Source: Mantamonas sphyraenae STR306 (Eukaryota > Protista > CRuMs). From it: DNA of 64,000 nt. Position numbers and translations under genes: made by a program. Each line of letters opens with the position of its first letter. Positions within the stretch are counted from its first letter, which is position 1. The DNA lies in contig JAPMXV010000011.1 of the NCBI GenBank assembly GCA_026936335.1, forward strand, positions 124,001 through 188,000, given 5' to 3'. The notes under the pieces are model-generated. The model made no database searches. It worked only from the letters and a program-made list of their open reading frames with translations, and was not told where the DNA came from. Below are positions 49,195 through 64,000 of the stretch, piece after piece.

Positions 49195-52100
49195 TCACAA
49201 CCCTTTGGGACGGATAGACGGTTGCACGCGGTTCCCGCGCCGAGTACGACGTGGGGTCAAACCCGGTGATCCTACACCGGCTCCCATTGCGTCTTCGGAA
49301 CCTCCACCCAGGCTGTGCAGCTTGTCTGCACGTCTTGCTTGCTCTTGCTGCTGTCTGTGCGCTTGTTGCATCACCAGTTTGGCTGTCGACACGGCTGGCA
49401 GACGCACCCTGTGCATCGGATGTTCCACAAGCACCGGTCCCACATCCACCGCTCCGTACGGGTTTGGCACAGCGCGATCTGGCGTACGTGCCTCCATCTC
49501 GCTGCTCTCCACTGCCCCTTCGCCAATCTGTGCCACCTCCACCTCGCCCGAATCGGACCCTTCTTCGTCCAGCGCCAATGGCGCCACATGCATCGATCCC
49601 TGCTTGTGCTGATCCTGCGTCGTCTGCACCAGCTTCTGCATTCGCTTCAGTTCCATGTATCGCTTCCACTTGGTGGCAATCAGCTTGGCTGCAAGCACCT
49701 CCTGGTGAGAACAGCTCAGCTGCGCCGCTTCACGAAAGTCCAATCGCTTCACCAGCCGTCGTCCTGCCTGGTCTGTTCCGTGGTACACCAGAGTCTGGTG
49801 CGCAATCTTGCGGTGGTCCTTCAGCAACGACATCACAACATTCTCTGTCACCGGGTTCTTTGGCATCGATGTGCCAAACGCCTTTTCCATGATGCCAAAG
49901 AAAGTCGGCAGGAACCGCAAGTTGCCTTCAGGGTCACTTGGAATGTGCAGGTCCCACATGAACTGCAGCTTGCGTCGCTTTCTCCACGCACGGCCCATGT
50001 ACCCCATCGGAGGTTCCAGCTGCTCCAGCAGTTCTGGCAGCTGTTCCACCCTGATGCGTCCCGTTGCCTTTGGGTCCAGCTCGGCCCACGCCAGCTCAAA
50101 TGTCTCTCGGTATTGCTGGTGCCGTGAGATGTGCTCACTCGGCTCGTCTTGCAGGTCGCTGTATGTGTTCAGCATCACCGCCACAAACAGATTCAACAAC
50201 ACAAACGACACCATCACCACGAACGACACAAAGAACAACGGTGCAATCGGCGTCCCGCAATTGTCCAGGTGAGCCTCGCAATCCGGAGGCTCCACCATGC
50301 ACTCGGACATCAGCGCCGGCCACGCCTCGCCCGTACTGATGCGAAACAACAGCAGCATGCTGTACGAGAACGTGGTAAAGTTGGCATGCCGCGTGATGTT
50401 GTCCTGGAACTTGACCAGCCCAAACAGGTTCATCCCCAGGATGGAGTACACCAGAAACAGCAGTGACAGAAGCGAGCCCACATTCGCCAGAGACGGGATG
50501 GCAATCCACAGCGTTTGCAGCAGCCGCAAAAGGCCCTTGGCACGTCGAATCAGCTTGAAGATGCGCGTGATGCGAAACACACGCAGGATCGCAGCCCCGA
50601 CCCCGCTGTCGCCAAACAGCTCCACCAGCGAGCCCAGTACAATGACAAAGTCCAACCGGTTCCAGCGGTCGTAAAAGTAGCGCCGCGGGTACAGCGCAAT
50701 GATTTTGACCACAAACTCAAACAGAAAGATAAAGGTGAACACCAGGTTGCTGGACTCTAGAAACGCACTGTGCGCGTCCGTCATGTCGTACGTGCGCGTG
50801 GCCATGATCACAATGTTCACCACAATGCACACCATGATACCGTAGTCAAAGTAGTCGTTGATGCACAGCCGGTACAGCCAGCGTCGCACAGGCGCCTCGG
50901 GCACCTTTTCCTTCAGTTTGGGTCTTCCCTTGATCAGGTTCTTCTGCGCCTCCACCCACTCCTGCTGGTCCTGCGTCATAAAAGGCGAGTTGTGCTTCTC
51001 AAACTCTGCTCGCTTGGTGTCATACGTGTCGATGACCACACCCACAAACAGGTTCACCACAAAGAATTGGCCCACAATAATGAACGCCACAAAGTACAGC
51101 GCATTGATCTCGTTTAGCGTTGCGCTCGGGTGCCACCCCCTGCGCCACCGCATCCACGCCGTTGAATAGCACGTCCACCCATCCTTCGCCGCTGGCCATT
51201 TCAAACAACGTCAGCTCGGCGTGGAACACGTCGTCAAAGTGCGAAGGGGCGTTGACCCAGCGTCGCTGCATCAGCTCCACGGTACCGTCTTCCATGGTGG
51301 CGTTAAACATGCCCGTGCACGCCTGCAGAGTCGTCACGCTCTCGTCGGTGCAAGTGTAAAACTTGCCTGCAAAGAGCTGCACGCCCAGGATACCAAAGAT
51401 GATAAAGAAGATCATGCAGAGCAGAGCCGCCTGGCCGATGTTGGGCAAGGCTGCAAAGATGGTGTTGACCACAAGCTTCAGCGCAGGGTAGCGAGACACG
51501 ACACGCAGCGGACGCAGCGCACGCAACGCTCGGAACGAGCGGAACGCCTTGAGGCCCGATGTGAACACGTTGAGCACAGACACGAGCACAATGAACCCAT
51601 CCAGCTTATTCCAGTGGTTCTTCAGGTACGCAGTCTCGCCCATGACCACGCCGTGCACAATCATCTTCATGACCATTTCCAAACCAAAAATGGCCAGAAA
51701 GAGCCAATCCAGCACCATCAACACCTGGCCCAGCTCGCTCTCTGGATTGAGCGTCGGATATTCCACCGCCAGTGCCAGCGTGCTCAGGAAGATGCACAAC
51801 AGGATGAAGCGCTCAAAGTACCTGTGTGCAACCACGTGTGCCAGCCACACACGCACCGGGTTATCCGGCGAAAACAGACCCATGGAATGGCCGTGGAGGT
51901 GCAAAAGCGTCACGTCGTCCCCATGCTCCTCCAGCGACTTGGATTCGCTATCCTCCGACGCATCGGCGGCCTCGGTGTCGGCGTTTGGCACTCGCATCGC
52001 CCCAACTGCCGCAGCCTGCACACGTGCCCTGCGGAACCGAGCCTTTGCTGCGTTGTGCCGGTTGGGAGTGTCATCGTCGGCGGCCAAGTCATCGCCCGAT

Positions 52101-55100
52101 GCAGACAGCAGCGAAGAGTTGCTCGTTTCCGACATCGACCTGGCACTCAGCAGCGAGTTGCTGCTGTCCAAGCGCTGCAGGAAGCGCGTACGCGGCACAT
52201 TGGGCAGTTCGCGTATGCCCTCTTCCTTCTTGCGCTTGCCTTGGATGGTCAGGGTGCGCTTGCGCGCAGGCGACGCACGAGAGCCAGCCGACACATTGCT
52301 GGCCGTGCTGTCCACGCTTGCCTCCGAGTCGTTGCGTTGGCGCAGCATGTTGACACGTGCTCCGATGTAGTTGCTCACGCTCATGGTGCGCTGACGGATG
52401 AAATTGGGCACCACCGTGCCACGGCGGCGCTTTTTCAGCATGGTCTTGCGCAGTTGCAGCTCCAACTCGCGACGCTGCTCGGCAAACTGGTCCACCAACA
52501 TGGCCACAAACAGGTTGAGCAGGATGTACGTGCCAAACAGCAGCAAGGAGACAAAGTACACCGAGGCCCACCAGCCCACGGCGCGGATGGCGTCAAACAG
52601 GATGAGCTGCCAATCCTCGCGTGTGAGCACCTGAAACACAGAGAGGAAAGCCCAGTGAAGTGTGTCAAAGTTCATGCGCGGCGAGCCGTCGTCAAAGTCA
52701 AACCTGTTGCCGAACCACTGCATGCCCAAGATCGTGTAGATAAACAGGTAGAGGAACAGCAGCATGGGAAAGTGCGAGATCGCGTTGAGGCACTTGATAA
52801 TCATCTTGAGCTGTTGGTTGATCTTGTTCCAGTTCTTGGCCAGCTTGACCACGCGGGCGAGACGGAATGCACGCAGGGCACTGATGCCTGTGTTGGTCGC
52901 GCCGCCGTCGCCGCCATACACGACGCCGATTTCCACGAGTGATACGAGCACAATGAAGCCGTCAAAGGCGTCGGACTTGTTGGTCCAGTAGGCGTTGAGA
53001 CCCAGGCCGATCCACTTGAGAAGCATTTCGCAGAGAAAGACAAAGGTAAAGACAAAGTTGGACACTTCGAGGGTCAACGTCCACCAGTCGGGCTGCTGGT
53101 AGTGCTCCGAGGCCAGCGAGAGTGTGTTGAGGAAAATGGCAGCCATGATGGCGTTGCTGAACCAGTCGTGTTGCACAATGTCAAAACAGCGCTGTTGAAG
53201 CTCGCTGCGCTGGTGATGCCTGTCGTAGGGGTGGAAAGGCAAGCACATGCGGCTCTTCCACACCTCGTCGAGCAGGTAGCGCACGTAGAAGGAAAGGGAG
53301 CCGACGCCTGCGACTTCGTCGTTGTTGCCGGCCCCGTCGTCCTCCGGGCGGTTGCCATCGCGGCGTGCGGTGTCCATGGTTTCCACAATGACGGCGAGTG
53401 CGAGGTTGATGAGGAAAAAGGAACCAAAAATGACCAGAATGATAAAGTAGATGACAACAAAGTCCGAGGTGGCGTCCTGCAGCCTGTACATGATGTCTGT
53501 CCAGCCCTCAAGAGTGAGAGTCTGGAAGATGATGAGTGCAGACGCGCCGAGGTTGTCAAAGGAGGAGATGCCGTGGTTGGGGTTGTCATGGGAGGCAGCC
53601 ACGGCGCAGTAGCTTCCGGACGGGCATTGGCGGCCGCCGATGTCGAGAGAGCCTTGCGGCTGCAGCGTACACTGTTGGTCACCATCGTCGAGCAGGCGTT
53701 GTGTTTGTGCGTCGAAACATCGTTGGCGCAGAGCTCCAGCAAAGAGTTGGACGCCAAAGATGCCAAAGACGACAAAGAGGAGGAGTGAGAGGAGGAGCAC
53801 GTCGAGGAGGCGCGGGAAACTGGTGATGAGTGCCGTGACCTGAAGTTTGAGGGCAGGGACGTGCGTGAGGGTGCGCAGGGGTCGAAGGACACGGATGGTG
53901 CGCACGCTGCTGACGTTGGTGGTGGAGGAGATGGGAAAGAAGCCGACGATGGAGGTGAGGACAAGGACAAAGTCTAGCCTGTTCCACGGATCGCGCACGT
54001 AGCAACGGAAGCCCGAGGCGATGATCTTGAAGGCCATTTCGACGATAAAGATGATGGAAAAGACAATCTCTGCGTTGTCGATGGTGAGGTTGTTGGGCGA
54101 GTTGTGGTCGGTGTCGCGCGGGTCGTACATGGCCAGAAAGACGCAGTTGAGGAGGATGGCTGTGAGGATGAAGCGGTCAAACAGTTTGTGGGTGACCACT
54201 CGCAACGCAAACTGACGCACGGGGTTGCGGACGTCGATGCACAGGAGCGCCTTTTCCTGCACGGGCAGCTTGCCGTAGTAGCCGTTGAATGAGTCGTCGC
54301 TGCTGATGCTATCGTCCGAGGAGATGTCCTTGTCATCTTTGGTGATGGGCTCGAGATTGACGAGGGAGACTGCATCGCGTGGGGAGGCAAGTTGCGTGGT
54401 GGTTACAAGCTGACTAACGGCCACCGAATCGCCAGCGGATGGCGGGACCTGGACAGTGAGATTGCGACGTGGTCGTTGTGTGGGCGACGCGGGAGTGTCT
54501 TGAGGTACACTTGCGTCTGCAGAGGGCTGTGTGTCTGTGCTTGTGGGCGCCTGTTGCTTCTGTGGGGCTGCTTTCCTGAGAGCGCCTTCAGGTTTGGTGA
54601 TATGTTCCAGCACGAGGCTGTTCTTGTCAGCCAGCATCATTCCTGAGATGGGAGGCACGGCGACGCCACGAGAGCGACGCACGGGCGGAGAGAGAGGCTG
54701 GTCGAGGGCCACAGCAACGGCTGTGCCTCGGGAGCGCCTGGGCAAAGGGGGTGTGGGAGCATGACGGATTGCCGCTCGTTTGGCCTCTTTGTTCTGTACA
54801 TGGTGAGAGGCCGACCCGGAGCCGGTGTGTGTGGTGTCCTGTGTGTCGTTTGCTTCGCCCATCACGGTGGATGTGTCGGCAAAGTGCACACGTAGGTCGC
54901 CAGCCGAGTCTTCCAGACGTCCCCGCGAGCCGCTCTGTTTCAAGATGCTGTGCAGCTCGGAGGAGTGCGAAGAAGCATCCCCCGAGCCTGCAGCGTCGGG
55001 TGTCGCTCTGTCCCCGGCATCGACGTGGGACGAGTCGAGATCTTCGCTCGTGTCAATGTGTGTGGAGGAGCCTACGCTGCTTGCGGGTCTGTCCAGACTC

Positions 55101-55216
55101 GGAAGCGGTGGCAAGGTGCCATCCCGAGCCACAAACGAGTCTGGACGAGGCCCACCAGGCTCTGGCAAGGGTATCCGAGCCAGGTCGGGCGTGGAGGACG
55201 TGTCCTCGCTCGACAT
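49195..55216 (-). CDS. Four-domain voltage-gated Ca2+/Na+ channel alpha subunit, EEEE filter (single +1 frameshift at ~51114)
   Basis: Four S4 segments (RTIRVLRPLRTL; RAFRLARVVKL; RSFRALRALRPLR; RVFRITRIFKLIR); pore loops TLEGW, TREDW, SGEGW, TGEAW; EF-hand-like and IQ-like C-tail. Confidence 0.93.
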
Positions 55217-55279
55217 GGTGGATGTGTTGTGTGTTTGGGTGACCCTGCGCCGCTGCAGGCAACGAAGGACAACTCGACG

Positions 55280-58068
55280 ATGGAAGCTATTGCACAACAT
55301 CCCTTTGTCGAACAGACTGTCAAGACCATCATTGAGCTTGGTGTGCCCCAGGACTACGCTCACTCGCTGTTGTTTGTGAGCGCTGCGCTGCTGGCCAACG
55401 TGAGTTTGCGTTGACCCTTTTTTGTATTGGATTCCGCCCGCTCTGCCCGGCCCCGTTTCTGTTGGAGGGATGCATGGAAGCAGGTGAAGAAACCCAGCCA
55501 GGCTTGTTCGGTGCAGTGTGCACGCGTGGAGTACGCGGGAAGTGCATGGCAGTGCCGCCTGGAGGGACCGGGCCCGAGCAACCTTGGGGGGAAAAGGCCA
55601 CGGTGGAATTGGCGATTGTGTGACAAGGCTGACACCAAAACACGACACGTACACATGCCACCGCGGTGTGAATCCGCTGGGAACCACATGGTGTGGATAT
55701 TTGCGGCCACTGGACACATGTACACGCGTGTGTGAACATGGGATGACGCGCATGGCCTGGTTTGGACGCTGGTGACGTGTGACGGGCATTTTTTGCGCGC
55801 GCCTGTTCTCGTTTTCTGCCGCGACGGACCACAGATCATCATCACGTACCTTGTGGCACCGCCGCTGTTCATGGCCCTGAATGTTCTGGACCGTTTGCTG
55901 GCTTTGGTGACGTCGAGCCGCTACGATGAAGTGAGTTTTGGGGAGAAAGTGTGTGTGCGGACGACACAGCACAACACGTCAGCAACCTCAACACCAGGCC
56001 CTCTCTCTTTCTCACACACGCACACACGCACACACCCTTTGGCAATCAGTTTGCCAACCAGAAGCCGCCTTACTCGGTCAAGGCCGGCGTGGCAGAGATG
56101 GACGACGAGACGGTGCCGATGCGCAACCAAATGTCTCCCAATGTGCTCGTGACGTCGCCTTTCCCTGGCGAGAACGTGGCCACGCTGAGCGACATCTTCC
56201 AGCGCAGTGTGGAGAAGTATGGTGACAAGCCGTGCTTCGGCACACGTGCACACCTGGGCACGGAGGAGAAGAAGGTGGGCGGCAAGACACTGCAGCTGCA
56301 AAAGCTGGGCCCGCTGAAGTATGAGTCGTACCGCGCCGTGGGCAAGCGAGTGGACAACATTGGCAACGGCCTGCGCAACCTGGGCTGCGAACCCAAGGAC
56401 AACGTGGGCATCTTCCAGGACACGCACGCCACGTGGCAGCTTGCTGCACAGGCGTGCTTCAGCCAGAGCATCGTGGTGGTCACATGTTACGCCACGCTGG
56501 GCATGGATGCACTCGTACACTCCATCAACGAGACGGAAATGTCGGTGATCTTCACCACTGCCGATCTGGTGCCCGTGCTGCTTGAGGCCTCCGAAGAGTG
56601 TCACAGCCTCACCACGGTGGTGGTGACCACGCCCAAGCCGACCAAGGAGCAGCTGGCCGCGTACAAGGACACCGACGTCCTCAATGTGATCTCCCTGGCC
56701 GACGTGGAGAAGGACGGCGCTGCCAACCCGCATCCCAAGCAATCGCCCCTGCCCGACGACCTGGCCGTCATCATGTACACCAGCGGATCCACGGGCATGC
56801 CCAAGGGCGTGCAGATCCTGCACCGCAACCTGGTGGCCGCTGTGGGTGGCCTGTCCATGCACATTGGCCTCACGGAGGAGCGTGACGATGTGTACCTGGG
56901 CTACCTGCCGCTGGCACACGTGTTGGAGCTGGTGGCCGAGACGTGCTGCATTGCCATGGGCAACCGCATCGGCTACGGCCACCCGCGTACGTTGACGGAC
57001 AAGGGCACCTTCAAGTGCGACGGCGACCTGGTCACTGTGCGCCCCACCATCTTTGCCGGCGTGCCCAAGGTCTACGACACCGTGCGCAAGGGGGCCATGG
57101 CCAAGATCAACAACTCGGGTGCCATTGTGCGCGCCCTCTTCAACTACGCCTACGAGGCCCGCCGCAAGGCCGTCCAAGCAAAGCGTGCCTCTCCCGTGTG
57201 GGACCGCTTGGTGTTCCGCAAGCTGCAGGCTGCGCTGGGTGGCCGTGTGCGTCGTCTGATTTCCGGCGGTGCCCCGCTGCACCCGGAGACCCAGGAGTGG
57301 CTGGCTGTGTGTTTGGGCGCCATTGTCGGCCAGGGCTACGGCCTCACCGAGACCTGCGGCTGTGCCACCGTTCAGAACGCAGACGATTTGGGCACAGCCG
57401 TCATCGGCTCGCCAGCCCCATGTGGCGAGATCAAGCTGGTCAGCCGCGAGGCGCTGGGCTACACCGTGCACGACAAGCCCAACCCGCGCGGAGAGCTGCT
57501 CGTGCGTGGTGGCCAGGTCACTGCAGGCTACTTCAAGAAGCCCGAAAAGACGGCCGAAGACTTTATCGAGGGTGGATGGTTCAAGACGGGCGATGTGGCT
57601 GAACAGCTGCCCAATGGCTCCTTCCGCATCGTCGACCGCGTAAAGAACCTGGTCAAGCTCAGTGGCGGCGAGTACATTGCGCTGGAGGCGCTGGAGAACG
57701 CGTACGGCAACTCGCCGCTGGTGGCCCCCAACGGCATCTGCGTGCGTGGCGACTCGCTGCGTGAGTTCCCTGTGGCCGTCGTCTGCCCACACCCGGACAA
57801 CATCGCCAAGTGGGCCCGCGACAACGGCATCCACGGCGACCTCGAGGCCCTGTGCAACAACCCAAAGGTGCGCGAGGGTGTCAAGAAGTCCCTGGACGCT
57901 GAGTGGAAGGCAAAGAAGATGGCTCGCCACGAGAAGCTCCAGGGTATCTTCCTCACCGAGACCGAGTGGACTCCGGAGAACCACATGCTCACCGCCGCCC
58001 AGAAACTCAACCGCCAGTCCATTTACAAGGAGTATGACGAGGAGTTGACCGCTCTGTATGACGAATGA
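55280..58068 (+). CDS. ACSL: Long-chain fatty acyl-CoA synthetase (ACSL3/4-like) (exons 55280-55399, 55835-55930, 56051-58068)
   Basis: IMYTSGSTGMPKGV, YLPLAHVLE, QGYGLTET, GWFKTGD, DRVKNLVKL..GEYIALE, TAAQKL. Confidence 0.93.
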
Positions 58069-58124: not shown

Positions 58125-58385
58125 GTCAGCGTGGCTGCTGCCCGCAGCCAATGACCTGACCTGTATTTCTCGTAAGTGCGTGAACGCACGCCAACGCACT
58201 ACATACAAATACTCGACCATGCCCAAAAGTTGGCTTGCTTCTGGACAATGGCTACCAGGGCGTCGTTGCTGGATGCCCTGGTTATTTTGCTTGAACATCG
58301 AGCGGTGGCTTGCGCTCGATGTGCTCCGTCTCTTCGAGCAGCTCCCGTCGTCGATGGAGCTGCATCAGATCATGTTCACTCACTC
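58125..58385 (-). ncRNA. Candidate Fanzor omegaRNA (multi-hairpin region directly downstream of the Fanzor stop)
   Basis: Inverted repeats 58132-58138/58144-58150, 58175-58181/58194-58200, 58254-58264/58272-58282, 58295-58304/58313-58322 (perfect 10 bp), 58338-58345/58356-58363; position matches known TnpB/Fanzor guide loci; boundaries approximate. Confidence 0.55.
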
Positions 58386-61300
58386 CTCCGTTTGAGTGGT
58401 GTTGGTATGATCATTGGACGTGTCCGTGACTGCTGCTTCGCTCGGCCTGCTGAATGGAACGGGTCGTTGTCCCGATTTGATCTGCTCCACAGTGATCCAG
58501 AAAAATGCCTCGCACGAGTGCTGGTCTCGTTGCATTGCTACGTGCAGCGGAATCTTCACGTCGTTGTGAATTTCCCGTTGCAGTAGTGCAAACAAGGTCT
58601 GCTTGCGTGTGTGGTGGTTGCGCGATCTGCTGCATCGGGGACAGTACTGCAGCCTGCCCAGAGGTTTACGCGACACATTGGTGTTGAAACTGAGTGTCTT
58701 CCCACACCTGTGCACCTTGGATGTGCGATACTCGTCGAGGTCCTTGACCACGTTGTAGTACGCGGCGAGCCTGTCCAGCACGTCCCCAGTGCGTCCCCCC
58801 AGGCTTGACTGCTTCTTGCCTCCAACCACAAGCACATCGTTCTTGGGCATGTCTCTGTCGGACATCATCTCCAGCGTCTTGTCGATTGTCCTTCTGAGGA
58901 AACGGGCCTGTGTGCGTGTGCCCCCTTTCCTTTGCCTCATCTCGTTGTGAGTCATGGTCGGCACGGACATCTGGAACACTGTGTCGTTGTGCGTCCACAT
59001 GAGAACCCAAGTGTCACGCGTTACGCCCCAGTCGACAAAAGCAAAGAGGGTATCGTTGACCATCTCTTTCCAAGCGGGTGTTGTCTGCGACTCGTCCTGC
59101 TCGCTCTCCATGCCACCACTAGTCACTTCCGCCTCCCTGTCCTGCGCACCGTTGTCAGCCCCTGTGCCAAGCGCCCGTGCCACGTCCTCCTCCCTGTCCT
59201 GCGCTCCATCGCCAGCCCCTGTGCCAAGCGCCCGTGCCACGTCCTCCTCCCTGTCCTGCGCTCCATCGCCAGCCTCTGTGCCAAGCGCCCGTGCCACGTC
59301 CTCCTCCCTGTCCTGCGCTCCATCGCCAGCCTCCGTGCCCAACGCCTGTGTCTCGTTCTCCGGGCTGCTCGTTCCCGTCTCTTCCTCCGTCGCGCCTTCA
59401 CCACTCTTCTTCGTACTCCAACCCCCGATGTCTCTGAACTTGTACACACCGCGCTTGCCAACCTTGCTTCCCATGTCTTTCATATGGTTCCAGTTCTCCT
59501 TTGCGACGAACCTTGCCATCCACGGGGGCAACTCATCCGTGAATTGCAACATGTTGATTGCAGTTGTGAACAGGGGCGCCGTCAGCTTGTTCAACCAGTT
59601 CTTCTTCTTGTCCTTGGTGCTCGTGTCGCCGTTCCCGCGGCGGACTTGAAGTTCCGCGAAGATGTACCAAAGATGACGCAGGCACTCTTCCTCCAGCCTC
59701 GTGACCAGAGCAGGGTCACCACGCGTCATGGGGTCAGTCACAAGGTTCTGCGGGTAGAAAATCGAGACACCCGCGCCTGTGTCTGACTCTCGCACAGTCC
59801 CTTTCCACCTCATCAGCTGGCTCGGCCTCATATGTTCAACCACGGGAGCGTGTGCAATGAGGCTCGCAAACAGATCATCGAGCAGGGGTCCAGGTTCGCA
59901 CGCGTGTACCCGCCACCACGAAAGCGAGTATGCCGCATCCTCCGGGATGCTGCTGTGATCTGCCTTCCACGCTTTCAGCACACGGCCACACGCCCCACTG
60001 TTCAGCTTTCCTGCGTGCACGTCCTTCCATCGCTCATCGCTGTGGAGTAGGAACGGAACCAGCAGCCTTTTGGCCTCCACTGGGCTAAAGTCGACTGCGT
60101 TGACGCTGTGTTCGTCGCCGAGATCCTCGATGAGGCCATGGAGGATGCACAAGTAGATGTGTCGCGTCTGTTTTGCCCTCTTGCCTGTGGTTTTGGTGGC
60201 CAGCATCGACTTCTTCTCGTCCATCTCGCCCAGGACGCGCACCGCAACCGCATGGGCAGCCTCGTACTCTGGCTTTTGCCTGAGCTCGTTCCCCGTCCTG
60301 ATGACCTGCTCTTGCGCCCTGGACCTTGTCTTCCTCGCTTCTGCTTGCAAGACATCGTGGACGACGCCAAGGTAGTCTTTTCCGACGCCGTGCCGGGCCA
60401 GCGCCGGCACGATGCGTGTCTCGCCGTAGTGGGCAACGATGGCGTCGCACGCCGCAAGCACCACCATCTGCTCCGCCTTGTCGACATCATCTGTGGCCAT
60501 GGTCGTTTGGTGTTTCACCAGGGCGAAGAAGAGCAGTGTCTGCTTCGAGGTCACCATCTTCTTCAGCTCGTTGCGCAGCCGGTCGCAGAGCATCGTACGC
60601 ATGTGCTGTGTGGCGGGCCCAAGGTCTCCTGCTGCGGTCAGGTCCAGGTCCAGCGTGTGGTCGCCACGGCCGTCGTCAACGACAACGTGCCCTTCGGTGT
60701 TGATGGCCAACGGCCTTCCGGCATGGGAGAGTAGATCTCCCACCAGGGAGTCACTTGAGCTGCTGATGATGTAGCGATCCACCAACGTCTGGATGCTTTT
60801 GAGTTTCTCCTGAGCATCGTCGCACTCCCAAGCGCTGGCGACTGCCAACACTCTGCCGGCAACTTCCATCACACTGGGCACAAGGTTGGCAAACTTGCGG
60901 GTGAGGTGCATCACCGTGACACTGTTCTCCACTTTCATGGCGTGGAACCGAGTCGCACCGGCGCTGGCAATCGCGTGCAGCAGACCGAGATCGAAGGGAA
61001 CCACACTGCCATTGCCGGGGAAAACATCGTCCAGGGCCCCTTGAAGGATCGTCGAGACTTGTGATACGAGCTCCTTCTTGTCCTTGGGCGGTGATTCGGC
61101 TGCGCTCTTTGGCCTGGTCAGGCCTTGCGGCGCGGGCGGTTGCTCCCTTGTGAACTCTGGGCGATCCTGCAGAGTCCCAATGGCACGTGCCGTCATCTTC
61201 TGGCCGTGCAGTGCACCGGTGTGATAAACCATGCCTCGCTGGGTTTCGTCGTACATCGACTCTGCCCTCATGTGCTCCAGGTCCTCGTCGGTAACAACCA

Positions 61301-64000
61301 CGCGCTTCACCCGAAACCGGAGCGACTGGAAGAGTTGAAGAGCGGTATAGCAGCCGTTGAGAGCGTTTGCTTGAGTGCGCAAGAGCCTGGTCAGCGGGAA
61401 AGTCGCGGCATCTGGCACCATCAACCCGTCCCTGCCCAGAGTCGCGCCAGTGCCGTCCAGCTGTGGGGCCAACTCGTGTTGCAGGTAGCGCACAACGGCG
61501 TCCAGGGGTTTGTCCTCGCTGAGGTCGCGTGTCCACTCTTTGGTGCGGTGGGTGTACGGCACGTTTGAGTTGTACAGCACGTTGATGTTTTCGCAGACGC
61601 GCTGAAACACATCGTTGTCCTTGTTGCCAGCGAGGATGATGGCCAACGCCAGTCTGCCGTTGCCCAGCTCGAGAGCCAGAGACACCTTGGCAACCACCCC
61701 CGTAGGCTGGTCTTGCGCTGGTCGCCGCGGCAAAACCCACCGGGCACCGCCTTGCACATTGAAAGCCATCGATACAGCCCTGGCCACACAGTCGGGACCA
61801 GACACAGCTTTCGTCACGTTGCCTCGGTGATTGATGACCTGAAGTCGGAAGTGGTTCTCGTTAATGCCCTGCGAGAGCAGAAACAGGGCGCCAACCCACT
61901 CGACGATTCTCGGGTACGTTGTGTGCGCCCTCAGCCAGATGGTATGCTCGTTGTCCACTTCTCGCAGACGCTGTGCGATGTCCTCGACTGACTCGGGCCG
62001 GAAGTCCTCAACGAGCTTCTGCAATGTCAGGTACGGCTTGATCTTGTTCTTGCGCTTCCTGTTGGTACTCTCCACTGTGCTAAGGGCAATGAGCAGCCTC
62101 TGTTGCTGGGCAGCTGTGACTCCTGGCGAACCTCGCAGCACATCTTCCATGGTGGCCAGCCCCAGGCAAACCACAACGGGGTGCGTGCCACGCACGTGGT
62201 CCACAGTCATCTTGTCAAAGGCCACGCTCGCCAAATCCAGGATGTTAACCACGCTTGACGACAACCCCGGGGTCTCTTCCATCTGCCCTGCCTCCTCCGT
62301 TGCCTCCTTCTGCTTGACCAACGCTTCCAAGCTGCTCTTGGACACTTTGCCGTTTGGCAGCTCCTTCTTCAGCTCCTTTTTGATGTCACGCACGTCACCC
62401 GTGCGCTGCACAGTGCCTTGTTCGCTGAACCACACGCAGGTGGCATCCACCTGCTCGTCGTCGACGTACTTCAGGGCGGTGTTGCGCATCCCATGACCAA
62501 TGCCGGTCACCAAATCCTCACGTGATGCTTGGTTATCGAACCGGACTTGCTCATCGTGGACTTTGGCCTCATGGACCCTGGGCTTGTGGCGTTTGCGTGA
62601 CCGGTTCCCCTTCCTCGGTTGCTTTCCCGGCTTCCCCTTCCTCAGTTGCTTTCTATGCCTTCCCTTCTTCTGCTGCTGGGCAACCTGGTTCCTTGCTGCC
62701 TGTTGCACCCGCACAGGCGCCCGTGAAAGCGACATCGGAGAGGTGGAGCCCATGGAGAACACAACACGCGCCTGTGTTCCCTGCTGCAGCACGACGTTCC
62801 CATCCACATACGATGAGTAGTCGTCGTGAACGCGATCGTCATCAAACACTCGCCAATGCGTGTCGTCCACACCCAGGACGAGTACGTAGTGGCCTGCCAA
62901 ACCATCGCCCAGATAGATGCCGATGGCCACCGCCTCACTGACGTCCATCCGCTCCACGACGGAGTTGCGTTCGTACGTGATCAAACAGTTTTCGGTGCAG
63001 GTGATCTCGTCTGTTTCCGTGCCAATCACCGTTGAGCATCTTCCACTAGAGCATGTCCATTGGAACTCTGCAACGTGGCCACTGTTAGCAGGCACGCTTG
63101 CAATGCTCGCCTGTGCTTCCACACTGGTCACCTTGTTGCCACACGAACAAAAAGCCTCCCTGGTTGTTGTTGAAAGTGCAGACGGGACGCCAGCGTTCTT
63201 GGCCTCCTCAAAAAGTGCCACGTGCTTCTCGTTTGCCAGCACCCTGTCGTCCATGGGCACGCGACTGGTGTCAAACGCACGAATGGCATGCTTGCTATCG
63301 ACACAACTGCAGAAGGTTGCCCACAAACACCCATAACTGCGGGAGAATGGGAGGCGTGGGGTGAGTGTGTGTGTGCAGGGTGCAGGCGCGCGTGGCGGCG
63401 CGCGTGTGGGCGCGTGTGTGGGGTCGATTCTCGCAACCTACGTCTCAGTCGAGCTTTGCTGGTGCCTCACAAGCCCGGAGTTGGAAACAACGGCGTCTGC
63501 ATGTAGCAGGAGCATCCATACTGTGCTGTCGTCAGCAGGAATGCCTTCCATTCCGGTGAGGTAGGCGAAGAGACCGACTAAACACCTGCCTTGCCACCTC
63601 CAATCTTCATGTACGTCCAGAGCCACAAGCCCGTTCGCGCCAACACTGAGAAGCAGCGCACGCACGGCGACGGTAGCGTGACACAACAATGCCATCGGGT
63701 TCCTTTGAGACGTGGGTTCGAGAGACCTGTCAGCAAAGGCACGAGCCGCGCCGGCACGCGCCAGAAAAAAACCTACTCTATGCCTCTCTTGCACTCTGCT
63801 ACAGTGGCACGGACATCCGTCACTGTGTTCAGATGCTCCACGGCGTCGGCAACAGTGCGTGTGCTCGGGGAAAGTGCGTCAGCAACGCCAGCGAGAGCAT
63901 CTGCACGCTGCTCCTGTGGCGTTGCGTCCCAAACTACCCAGGGCAGCACGTGTGAGTGTCTCTCTGCATAGACCCTGCAATCCAGGCCATACGTACCTTT
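58380..64000 (-). CDS. Fanzor1-like (TnpB-family) RuvC nuclease with N-terminal USP/C19-like deubiquitinase domain; 5'-truncated (exons >64000-63997, 63913-63777, 63702-63442, 63336-58380)
   Basis: RuvC-I FVDWG (D 59031-33), RuvC-II LDEYRTSK (E 58731-33), Zn-finger HRC...CPRC, RuvC-III QRDQHS (D 58524-26), terminal GQRPVPFSR; spliced GIENPMALLCHA (Cys box), HQQSSTE, AGHYV, WRVFDDDRV. Confidence 0.8.
59132..59345 (-). repeat. 57-bp coding tandem repeat (~3.7 copies; ALGTEAGDGAQDREEDVAR)
   Basis: Period 57 (59161, 59218, 59275), in frame, just N-terminal of RuvC-I. Confidence 0.92.

Follow-up and report, generated by a model that had tools for sequence, protein, structure and literature searches.

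The window analysed here, a stretch of 64,000 nucleotides from Mantamonas sphyraenae STR306 (GenBank assembly GCA_026936335.1, contig JAPMXV010000011.1, positions 124,001 to 188,000), contains most of a transposon-borne gene that joins a domain of the ubiquitin-specific protease (USP) type to a RuvC-type nuclease domain that appears to belong with those of TnpB and Fanzor. Because, in four copies of the element, the USP His box and Asp and the RuvC domain share one exon that runs for over 1,600 codons without a stop, the fusion is independent of the intron model and is present at the level of the DNA itself. Mariner/IS630-borne Fanzors, intron-containing Fanzors with nuclear signals and transposon deubiquitinases (DUBs) are each known separately; the fusion was not found in the papers searched. 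We explain the locus as an active transposon whose cargo is a four-exon, 1,854-amino-acid (aa) USP–Fanzor-like gene, served by an omega-RNA, maintained by homing and aided by a USP acting in cis, and we put the probability of this explanation as a whole at roughly 0.6. Coordinates are window positions, and those above 64000 are window-equivalents in the contig sequence past the window end; copies of the element are labelled by contig (C2, C11, C41, C43, C46, C51 and C59), C11 being the copy in the window.

A USP-type and a RuvC-type domain in one exon

A first-pass annotation, made from the letters alone, had proposed that a 1648-aa open reading frame (ORF) encodes a Fanzor fused to a USP-type DUB, with three introns upstream. 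The ORF (58380-63326, minus strand), which begins at TTG, is real, and the motifs named in it all lie where they had been placed (Table 1). It lies within the last exon of the gene (exon 4, 63336-58380, minus strand; 1,652 codons including the stop, no internal stops), which is uninterrupted in C11, C59, C41 and C2, is frameshifted in C43, and carries a repeat expansion and frameshifts in C46. Sequence beyond 64000, which the annotation had suggested retrieving, contains the start codon, a DD34E transposase and the far end of the element. The start codon lies at window-equivalent 64186 (C11:188186) and is kept in C59, C46 and C43. Exons of 190, 157, 261 and 4,957 nt add up to 5,565 nt, or 1,855 codons with the stop and none internal, giving a predicted product of 1,854 aa, in keeping with the suggestion of one polypeptide of more than 1780 aa.

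Conserved introns suggest that the four exons are spliced. Introns 2 and 3 had been placed correctly, and their codon positions and GT-AG ends are retained between copies that are ~30-40% identical in protein. The acceptor assigned to intron 1 (63914) had to be rejected, as it leads to a stop after 10 codons from the start at 64186 and is absent in C43; the corrected acceptor, 63934, is in frame in all four near copies, in which the intron measures 63, 63, 71 and 61 nt. Joining the Cys box to the rest of the predicted protein requires splicing, and the upstream exons might in principle not be spliced to the long exon, so that the product starts within exon 4 and holds half a USP. We give this hardly any credence: the interiors of introns 2 and 3 have diverged, yet their position, phase and GT-AG ends are unchanged, and exon 3 has 86 codons in C11, C2 and C41 and is under purifying selection. 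Between diverged copies of the gene, the ratio of nonsynonymous to synonymous divergence (dN/dS) is 0.17-0.38.

Searches made exon by exon with the spliced gene model support a USP-type domain at the N terminus. For the window copy alone no Pfam match was found, and a PDB search at E values up to 10 gave a single match, to a USP (E 0.069). Matches to PF00443 fall on the His box (E 4e-4 for C2, 9e-4 for C41), under the Pfam cut-off of 23.9 bits; the best score, obtained with exon 4 alone, was 20.4 bits. A five-copy profile of the start of exon 4 retrieved 94 PDB sequences, of which the top 60 all belong to the USP family (best E 3.7e-7 over 120 positions). This agrees with the first-pass reading of the N terminus, with motif and conservation as the basis for the putative Cys box. 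The top match is the histone DUB Ubp8, which says nothing about the substrate. When the exon 4 copies are compared, the His, the next Asp/Asn and the finger cysteines are conserved. In exon 3, where C11 is 37-39% identical to C2 and C41, an invariant Cys opens a hydrophobic helix and a QQ box closes the exon, with Cys, the putative oxyanion Asn and QQ invariant; by motif and conservation this Cys is the putative catalytic residue. Cys, His and Asp are retained in C11, C59, C41 and C2. About 228 residues separate Cys from His and 16 separate His from Asp, as in a minimal USP core.

Like cellular USPs (Ubp8/USP22, USP12/46, USP14, USP7; PF00443), the element's domain has Zn fingers, a His box and the Asp, preceded by a putative Cys box and QQ box, in the same order and at minimal-core spacing, but it scores under the Pfam cut-off, its Cys box is altered and it has no close host paralogue. 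The five-copy profile matches the nearest host USP at no better than E 9e-5, so the capture is old. The USP is the fastest-evolving folded part of the protein, with 17-23% identity between sub-families. Between C41 and C2 its dN/dS is 0.28 in the exon 4 part and 0.38 in exon 3, at a synonymous divergence (dS) near 1; across comparisons exon 3 ranges from 0.26 to 0.51.

Converging, individually weaker lines of evidence support a divergent RuvC domain of the TnpB/Fanzor type at the C terminus. The D-E-D triad is invariant in five copies, and the dN/dS of the domain (0.08-0.17) is the lowest of the gene. Six residues separate the Glu from the first Zn ligand, a His, matching the rearranged Glu (E-alt) of Fanzor and TnpB, which lies six residues ahead of the first Zn ligand (PMC10711439). 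In language-model (ESM) features, the last 226 aa score 0.92 to Cas12f1-like_TNB clusters of giant viruses and fungi, and nine of the ten best named matches agree. PF07282 is the best Pfam match of C2 (E 0.086), with none on the window copy, and a PF07282-positive giant ORF found elsewhere in this genome can be aligned with the domain in register over strand 4, helix and Zn knuckle (pairwise E 0.005). Searches of Pfam, NCBIfam, PHROGs and PDB with the window ORF or the RuvC domain alone returned nothing significant. The AlphaFold model of the domain has a predicted local distance difference test score (pLDDT) of 54 and contains a predicted RNase H-like core of three strands, helix, strand and helix at pLDDT 62-84; its fold matches are RNase H-like (Z up to 7.5), with RuvC, IsrB, IscB, Cas9 and Cas12 among the tied ones and none specific. 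Of the earlier assignment to Fanzor1, the TnpB/Fanzor-type RuvC with its invariant triad stands; several published Fanzor fingerprints are missed and membership of Fanzor1 is not established. The nuclease is Fanzor-like, and we take it to work like a Fanzor.

A candidate guide RNA and an unusual transposon

From the stop codon to the right end of the transposon, 219 nt fold far better than shuffled sequences (z -5.33 in C11, -4.41 in C2), more strongly on the sense strand; the other non-coding parts of the element show no such folding. Across sub-families the hairpins persist, with two compensatory changes and two one-sided ones, counted over few independent sequences. A 6-nt segment directly after the stop, invariant across copies, is complementary to the last hairpin and could form a long-range pair or pseudoknot; such pairing has been reported for TnpB and Fanzor2, not for Fanzor1 (PMC10711439). 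The region 58161-58379 has no Rfam match. A conserved, structured non-coding region runs from the end of the ORF to the transposon right end, as in Fanzor and TnpB loci, and the flank that follows differs in each of the seven copies. By analogy with TnpB and Fanzor biology, this flank would serve as the guide.

The RuvC domain and the RNA region stand apart from the rest of the gene in their divergence. Between C41 and C2 their dS is 0.16 vs ~1.0 elsewhere, C11 and C2 are 88% identical in protein here vs ~30% elsewhere, and over the last 230 nt C11, C59 and C43 do not differ at all, though the USP region of C43 is only ~60% identical. These comparisons indicate that RuvC and RNA are homogenised or exchanged between copies as a unit.

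The transposase belongs to the IS630 family (NF033545, 142.5 bits against a cut-off of 100; PF13358, E 2e-24; PF00292) and has a paired-like helix-turn-helix. It is 99-100% identical in four copies, with dN/dS <= 0.05, and the transposon is young. A DNA search of the 25-Mb genome, carrying out the copy count that had been suggested, found six long copies (C11, C59, C46, C43, C41 and C2) and an 844-bp internal deletion derivative on C51; the seven insertions have different flanks and the same ends. Every copy starts and ends with CAG, a direct repeat (58159-58163 and equivalent 66971-66975), with one additional base at the left end of C46. TA target-site duplication is typical of IS630 and mariner elements (PMC13565253). 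The present transposon is odd for its superfamily, as TA duplication and terminal inverted repeats are both absent: in place of the latter, the two ends share just 9 bp in inverted orientation, located 18-26 nt from each terminus, and the seven copies show 2-bp duplications (GT, CG, CG, CA, CA, CT and TT) in a TG-NN-CA context, five of the seven left flanks ending in (C/T)TG. A 4-bp duplication was considered and set aside, since it fits 5/7 copies vs 6/7 for 2 bp. If excision were staggered by 3 nt, the ends left behind would be cohesive and would yield a single defined footprint.

The left end of the element also opens at least eight others, which bear an ORF that exceeds the PF07282 cut-off ~6 kb downstream (1,780-1,861 codons, one 582), and five transposase relatives sit 6-7.5 kb from further PF07282 matches. 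Together these mark the position as a Fanzor cargo slot; as judged from sequence, one mobile chassis carries swappable giant Fanzor cargo.

The eight elements (C8:260865, C45:420279, C30:152578, C58:204023, C10:237342, C25:251905, C55:397032 and C31:337629) have left ends 87-90% identical over 100-190 nt, lack the USP and have a different right end. The genome as a whole holds more than 55 TnpB/Fanzor-like loci, mostly ORFs of 1,500-2,100 codons in several families. The 844-bp derivative (C51:522296-523299; L028:3297-4300) retains the whole candidate omega-RNA and is inserted ~160 nt past the stop of another giant Fanzor, probably within the RNA region of that element.

A proposed mechanism and its alternatives

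We propose that an active IS630/Tc1-type cut-and-paste transposon carries the four-exon gene as cargo. The 1,854-aa product would start with a USP-type cysteine isopeptidase and a basic nuclear signal and continue through a large helical body to a Fanzor-type RuvC, and the structured right end, transcribed on into the flank, would yield an omega-RNA whose guide is the DNA adjoining the insertion. Once the transposase has removed the element, the vacated site would be cut by the protein and host repair would copy the element back from another chromatid or another copy (restorative homing), following the homing model for Fanzor transposons (PMC13565253). The USP would remove ubiquitin in cis from the protein–RNA complex itself, allowing it to escape the proteasome, or alternatively would act in cis at the cut, on chromatin and repair factors. 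The fusion may thus let the element strip host protein tags at its cut site. Splicing, expression, guide use, cleavage, homing and the DUB activity with its substrate are steps that we infer.

Described Fanzors are compact, single-activity nucleases. If the explanation holds, this would be the first natural RNA-guided nuclease–DUB fusion found so far, selected, mobile and three times larger, and it would show how RNA-guided nucleases adapt to eukaryotic ubiquitin control, whether of turnover, chromatin or repair-pathway choice. It would also offer a direct test of why cut-and-paste transposons retain Fanzors. A further-reaching version sees a natural single-chain, RNA-programmable nuclease–DUB in which the omega-RNA steers an active USP to chosen DNA, where it erases ubiquitin on chromatin or repair factors and so favours repair by homing; the giant Fanzors of this genome would then form a modular radiation, this protein among them, that swaps N-terminal enzymes on a shared transposon left end. 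This version is tentative, and we consider it rather doubtful.

A number of observations weigh against the proposed explanation, beginning with the USP. Exon 3, which holds the Cys box, alone has no hidden Markov model (HMM) match; the Cys box exceeds the USP consensus by one residue and is interrupted by intron 2; and in the C11 lineage the dN/dS of the USP is ~0.5-0.6 (C11-C43 and C11-C59, the latter with few changes). The divergent Cys box, the lack of an HMM match for exon 3, the fast evolution of the domain and the existence of other giant Fanzors that manage without a USP on the same left end would all suit a working RNA-guided Fanzor whose USP fold is no deubiquitinase but binds ubiquitin as a pseudo-enzyme, or works as a protease on the 1,854-aa precursor or on another substrate such as the transposase. 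This is unlikely though by no means negligible; Cys, His, Asp, the QQ box and the finger cysteines are retained across sub-families at saturated synonymous sites, and no conserved cleavage-site-like motif was seen downstream of the USP domain.

On the nuclease side, HMM, PDB and fold searches matched no known Fanzor significantly, and REC and WED domains were not recognised before the RuvC in searches or in a model with pLDDT 36. The DPG motif at RuvC-I, a Fanzor/TnpB fingerprint (PMC10711439), is DWG in all copies. From the first D to the TS pair there are 102 residues, outside the published 125-275 (PMC3627910). The finger lacks the four cysteines: TS-X-X is present, the first knuckle is H-x-C and the second CxxC. 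The variable 2-bp duplication fits poorly with the known Fanzor1 scheme, in which a fixed duplication is folded into the RNA scaffold (PMC10711439). The RD spacing does agree with Fanzors: it is 34 residues past the finger, within the 5-50 of one account (PMC3627910), though outside the tighter 4-8 of another (PMC10711439).

Two alternatives draw on these nuclease features. In one, the C terminus is another RNase H-fold nuclease that uses no RNA guide, and the 3′ hairpins are a terminator or a transposon-end structure. The lack of a significant TnpB/Fanzor profile or structure match and the generic RNase H-like fold matches would be expected of such a protein, yet the ESM features, the motif order with a Zn knuckle between E and the last D, the cargo slot shared with PF07282-positive ORFs, and an RNA structure that is limited to the 3′ end and co-converted with RuvC make this very improbable. 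In the other, which we judge quite improbable, the protein binds DNA under RNA guidance, cuts it weakly or never, and mainly delivers the DUB to chromatin by the insertions, a natural epigenome editor shielding the element from silencing. Bacteria do have inactive TnpB-derived regulators, and the RuvC deviates from Fanzor fingerprints in its DWG, its short bridge region of 99 residues between D and E, the His of its first knuckle and the 34-residue insert before RuvC-III; against this, the three acidic residues are invariant, the dN/dS of RuvC is the lowest of the gene, and the guides would simply be the DNA flanking the individual insertions, a feature of homing systems.

Known systems and remaining features of the element

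In gene order the element resembles the Tc1/mariner elements PGv-1 and PUl-1, which carry Fanzor1 (Bao and Jurka 2013, PMC3627910), and the IS630-linked TnpBs of Klosneuvirinae (PMC10691335): after a DDE transposase comes a TnpB-family RuvC gene with its 3′ end close to that of the element, and non-autonomous derivatives exist. Those elements have TA duplications and terminal inverted repeats, whereas the present one has a 2-bp duplication in TG-NN-CA, a CAG direct repeat and a 9-bp match, and its nuclease is about three times longer and bears a USP. With the characterised Fanzor1 proteins SpuFz1, GtFz1 and PpFz1 (PMC11423790) and the intron-containing CrFNuc, which has a nuclear signal (PMC10530073), the predicted protein and its gene share a C-terminal D-E-D RuvC, a putative Zn-binding TNB region, predicted introns, a candidate nuclear signal and a candidate structured right-end RNA. 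Most Fz1 proteins are 600-700 aa long with RNAs of 75-150 nt (PMC11423790), in contrast to 1,854 aa and a 219-nt structured region here, where DWG replaces DPG, a His stands in the first knuckle, a USP is N-terminal and REC/WED are not recognisable.

Papain-fold isopeptidases joined to transposon nuclease proteins have precedents. Helitron and Helentron proteins hold VTD and OTU deubiquitinase domains, of which the VTDs are active (PMC9741609), and OTU and Ulp1 are reported in Ginger elements (PMC2836005). Those domains are VTD, OTU or Ulp1 on a transposase or RepHel, whereas here a USP (C19) is joined to a candidate RNA-guided nuclease. On an unrelated metagenome contig, another transposon–DUB pairing places a MULE transposase gene 2 kb from an OTU gene (L082:15025-18775).

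No homologues outside this genome were found in a length-limited search of 5.8 billion proteins, among 1.84 billion representatives, or on metagenome or viral contigs; transposase relatives elsewhere are only ~30% identical, and no comparable cargo was seen with them. A Fanzor fused to a deubiquitinase or ubiquitin protease was likewise not found in the literature searched, whose coverage left out most subscription papers, and so the initial impression that no such fusion had been described holds to that extent.

Between the two domains, the basic tract proposed to follow the USP was found as a candidate nuclear localisation signal, and the middle region beyond it is under purifying selection (dN/dS 0.14-0.30). 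This region has no match in Pfam, NCBIfam, PHROGs, PDB, the ESM Atlas or the 1.84-billion library, and its AlphaFold model is the one with pLDDT 36. An XPG/FEN1 PIN nuclease in it was not confirmed, as neither PF00752 nor PF00867 matches on this element, with the possible exception of a very degenerate copy. The acidic tandem repeat ahead of the RuvC is shorter in C2 and C41 and has grown by ~3 kb in C46 (C46:153900-156800), where the frame is broken.

Table 1. Features of the element, gene and predicted protein
Feature	Position	Strand	Remarks
IS630/Tc1-type transposon, part in window	58161..64000	-	whole element 8,813 bp; left end 66973
DD34E transposase	window-equivalent 65594-66634		346 aa; in 5′ part of element
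Exon 1, last 4 nt in window	63997..64000	-	full exon 190 nt
Intron 1	63934..63996	-	63 nt, GT-AG, phase 1; corrected acceptor
Exon 2	63777..63933	-	157 nt; 3′ end is first half of USP Cys box
Intron 2	63703..63776	-	74 nt, GT-AG, phase 2; interrupts Cys box; same position in C2, C41, C43
Exon 3	63442..63702	-	261 nt; putative catalytic Cys 63683-63681, thumb helices, QQ box 63464-63444
Intron 3	63337..63441	-	105 nt, GT-AG, phase 2; C/A-rich tract, host-like
USP fingers and palm	62780..63336	-	two Cys knuckles at 63149, 63053; His 62891, Asp 62843
Basic tract, candidate nuclear localisation signal	62562..62675	-	18/38 K/R; C2 and C41 also basic
Middle region, ~1,050 aa	59403..62570	-	mostly helical; expected site of REC/WED equivalents
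Acidic tandem repeat	59124..59361	-	57-bp (19-aa) unit, 4.2 copies; variable linker ahead of RuvC
Divergent TnpB/Fanzor-type RuvC and Zn knuckles	58422..59075	-	RuvC-I D 59033, RuvC-II E 58733, H/C 58712/58706, CxxC (CPRC) 58643-58632, RuvC-III D 58526
Candidate omega-RNA scaffold	58161..58379	-	five hairpins; terminates at transposon right end 58161; holds right subterminal inverted 9-mer
Right flank	58141..58160	-	2-bp target-site duplication 58160-58159 and predicted guide segment

The 1.4-kb spacer between the transposase and USP genes (L017:180-1590) contains diverged internal duplications, among them a 45-nt unit repeated 604 nt apart, and it differs strongly between near-identical copies, with about seven 143-bp units in C41. 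One stretch of it, window-equivalent 64755-64636, folds well on the opposite strand (z -4.7). The C11 insertion lies between convergent host genes that we take, by eye, to be a diphthamide-synthesis-like and an acyl-CoA-synthetase-like gene, and window positions 49195-55972 (minus strand) presumably hold a gene for a four-domain voltage-gated cation channel, named by eye from its translation.

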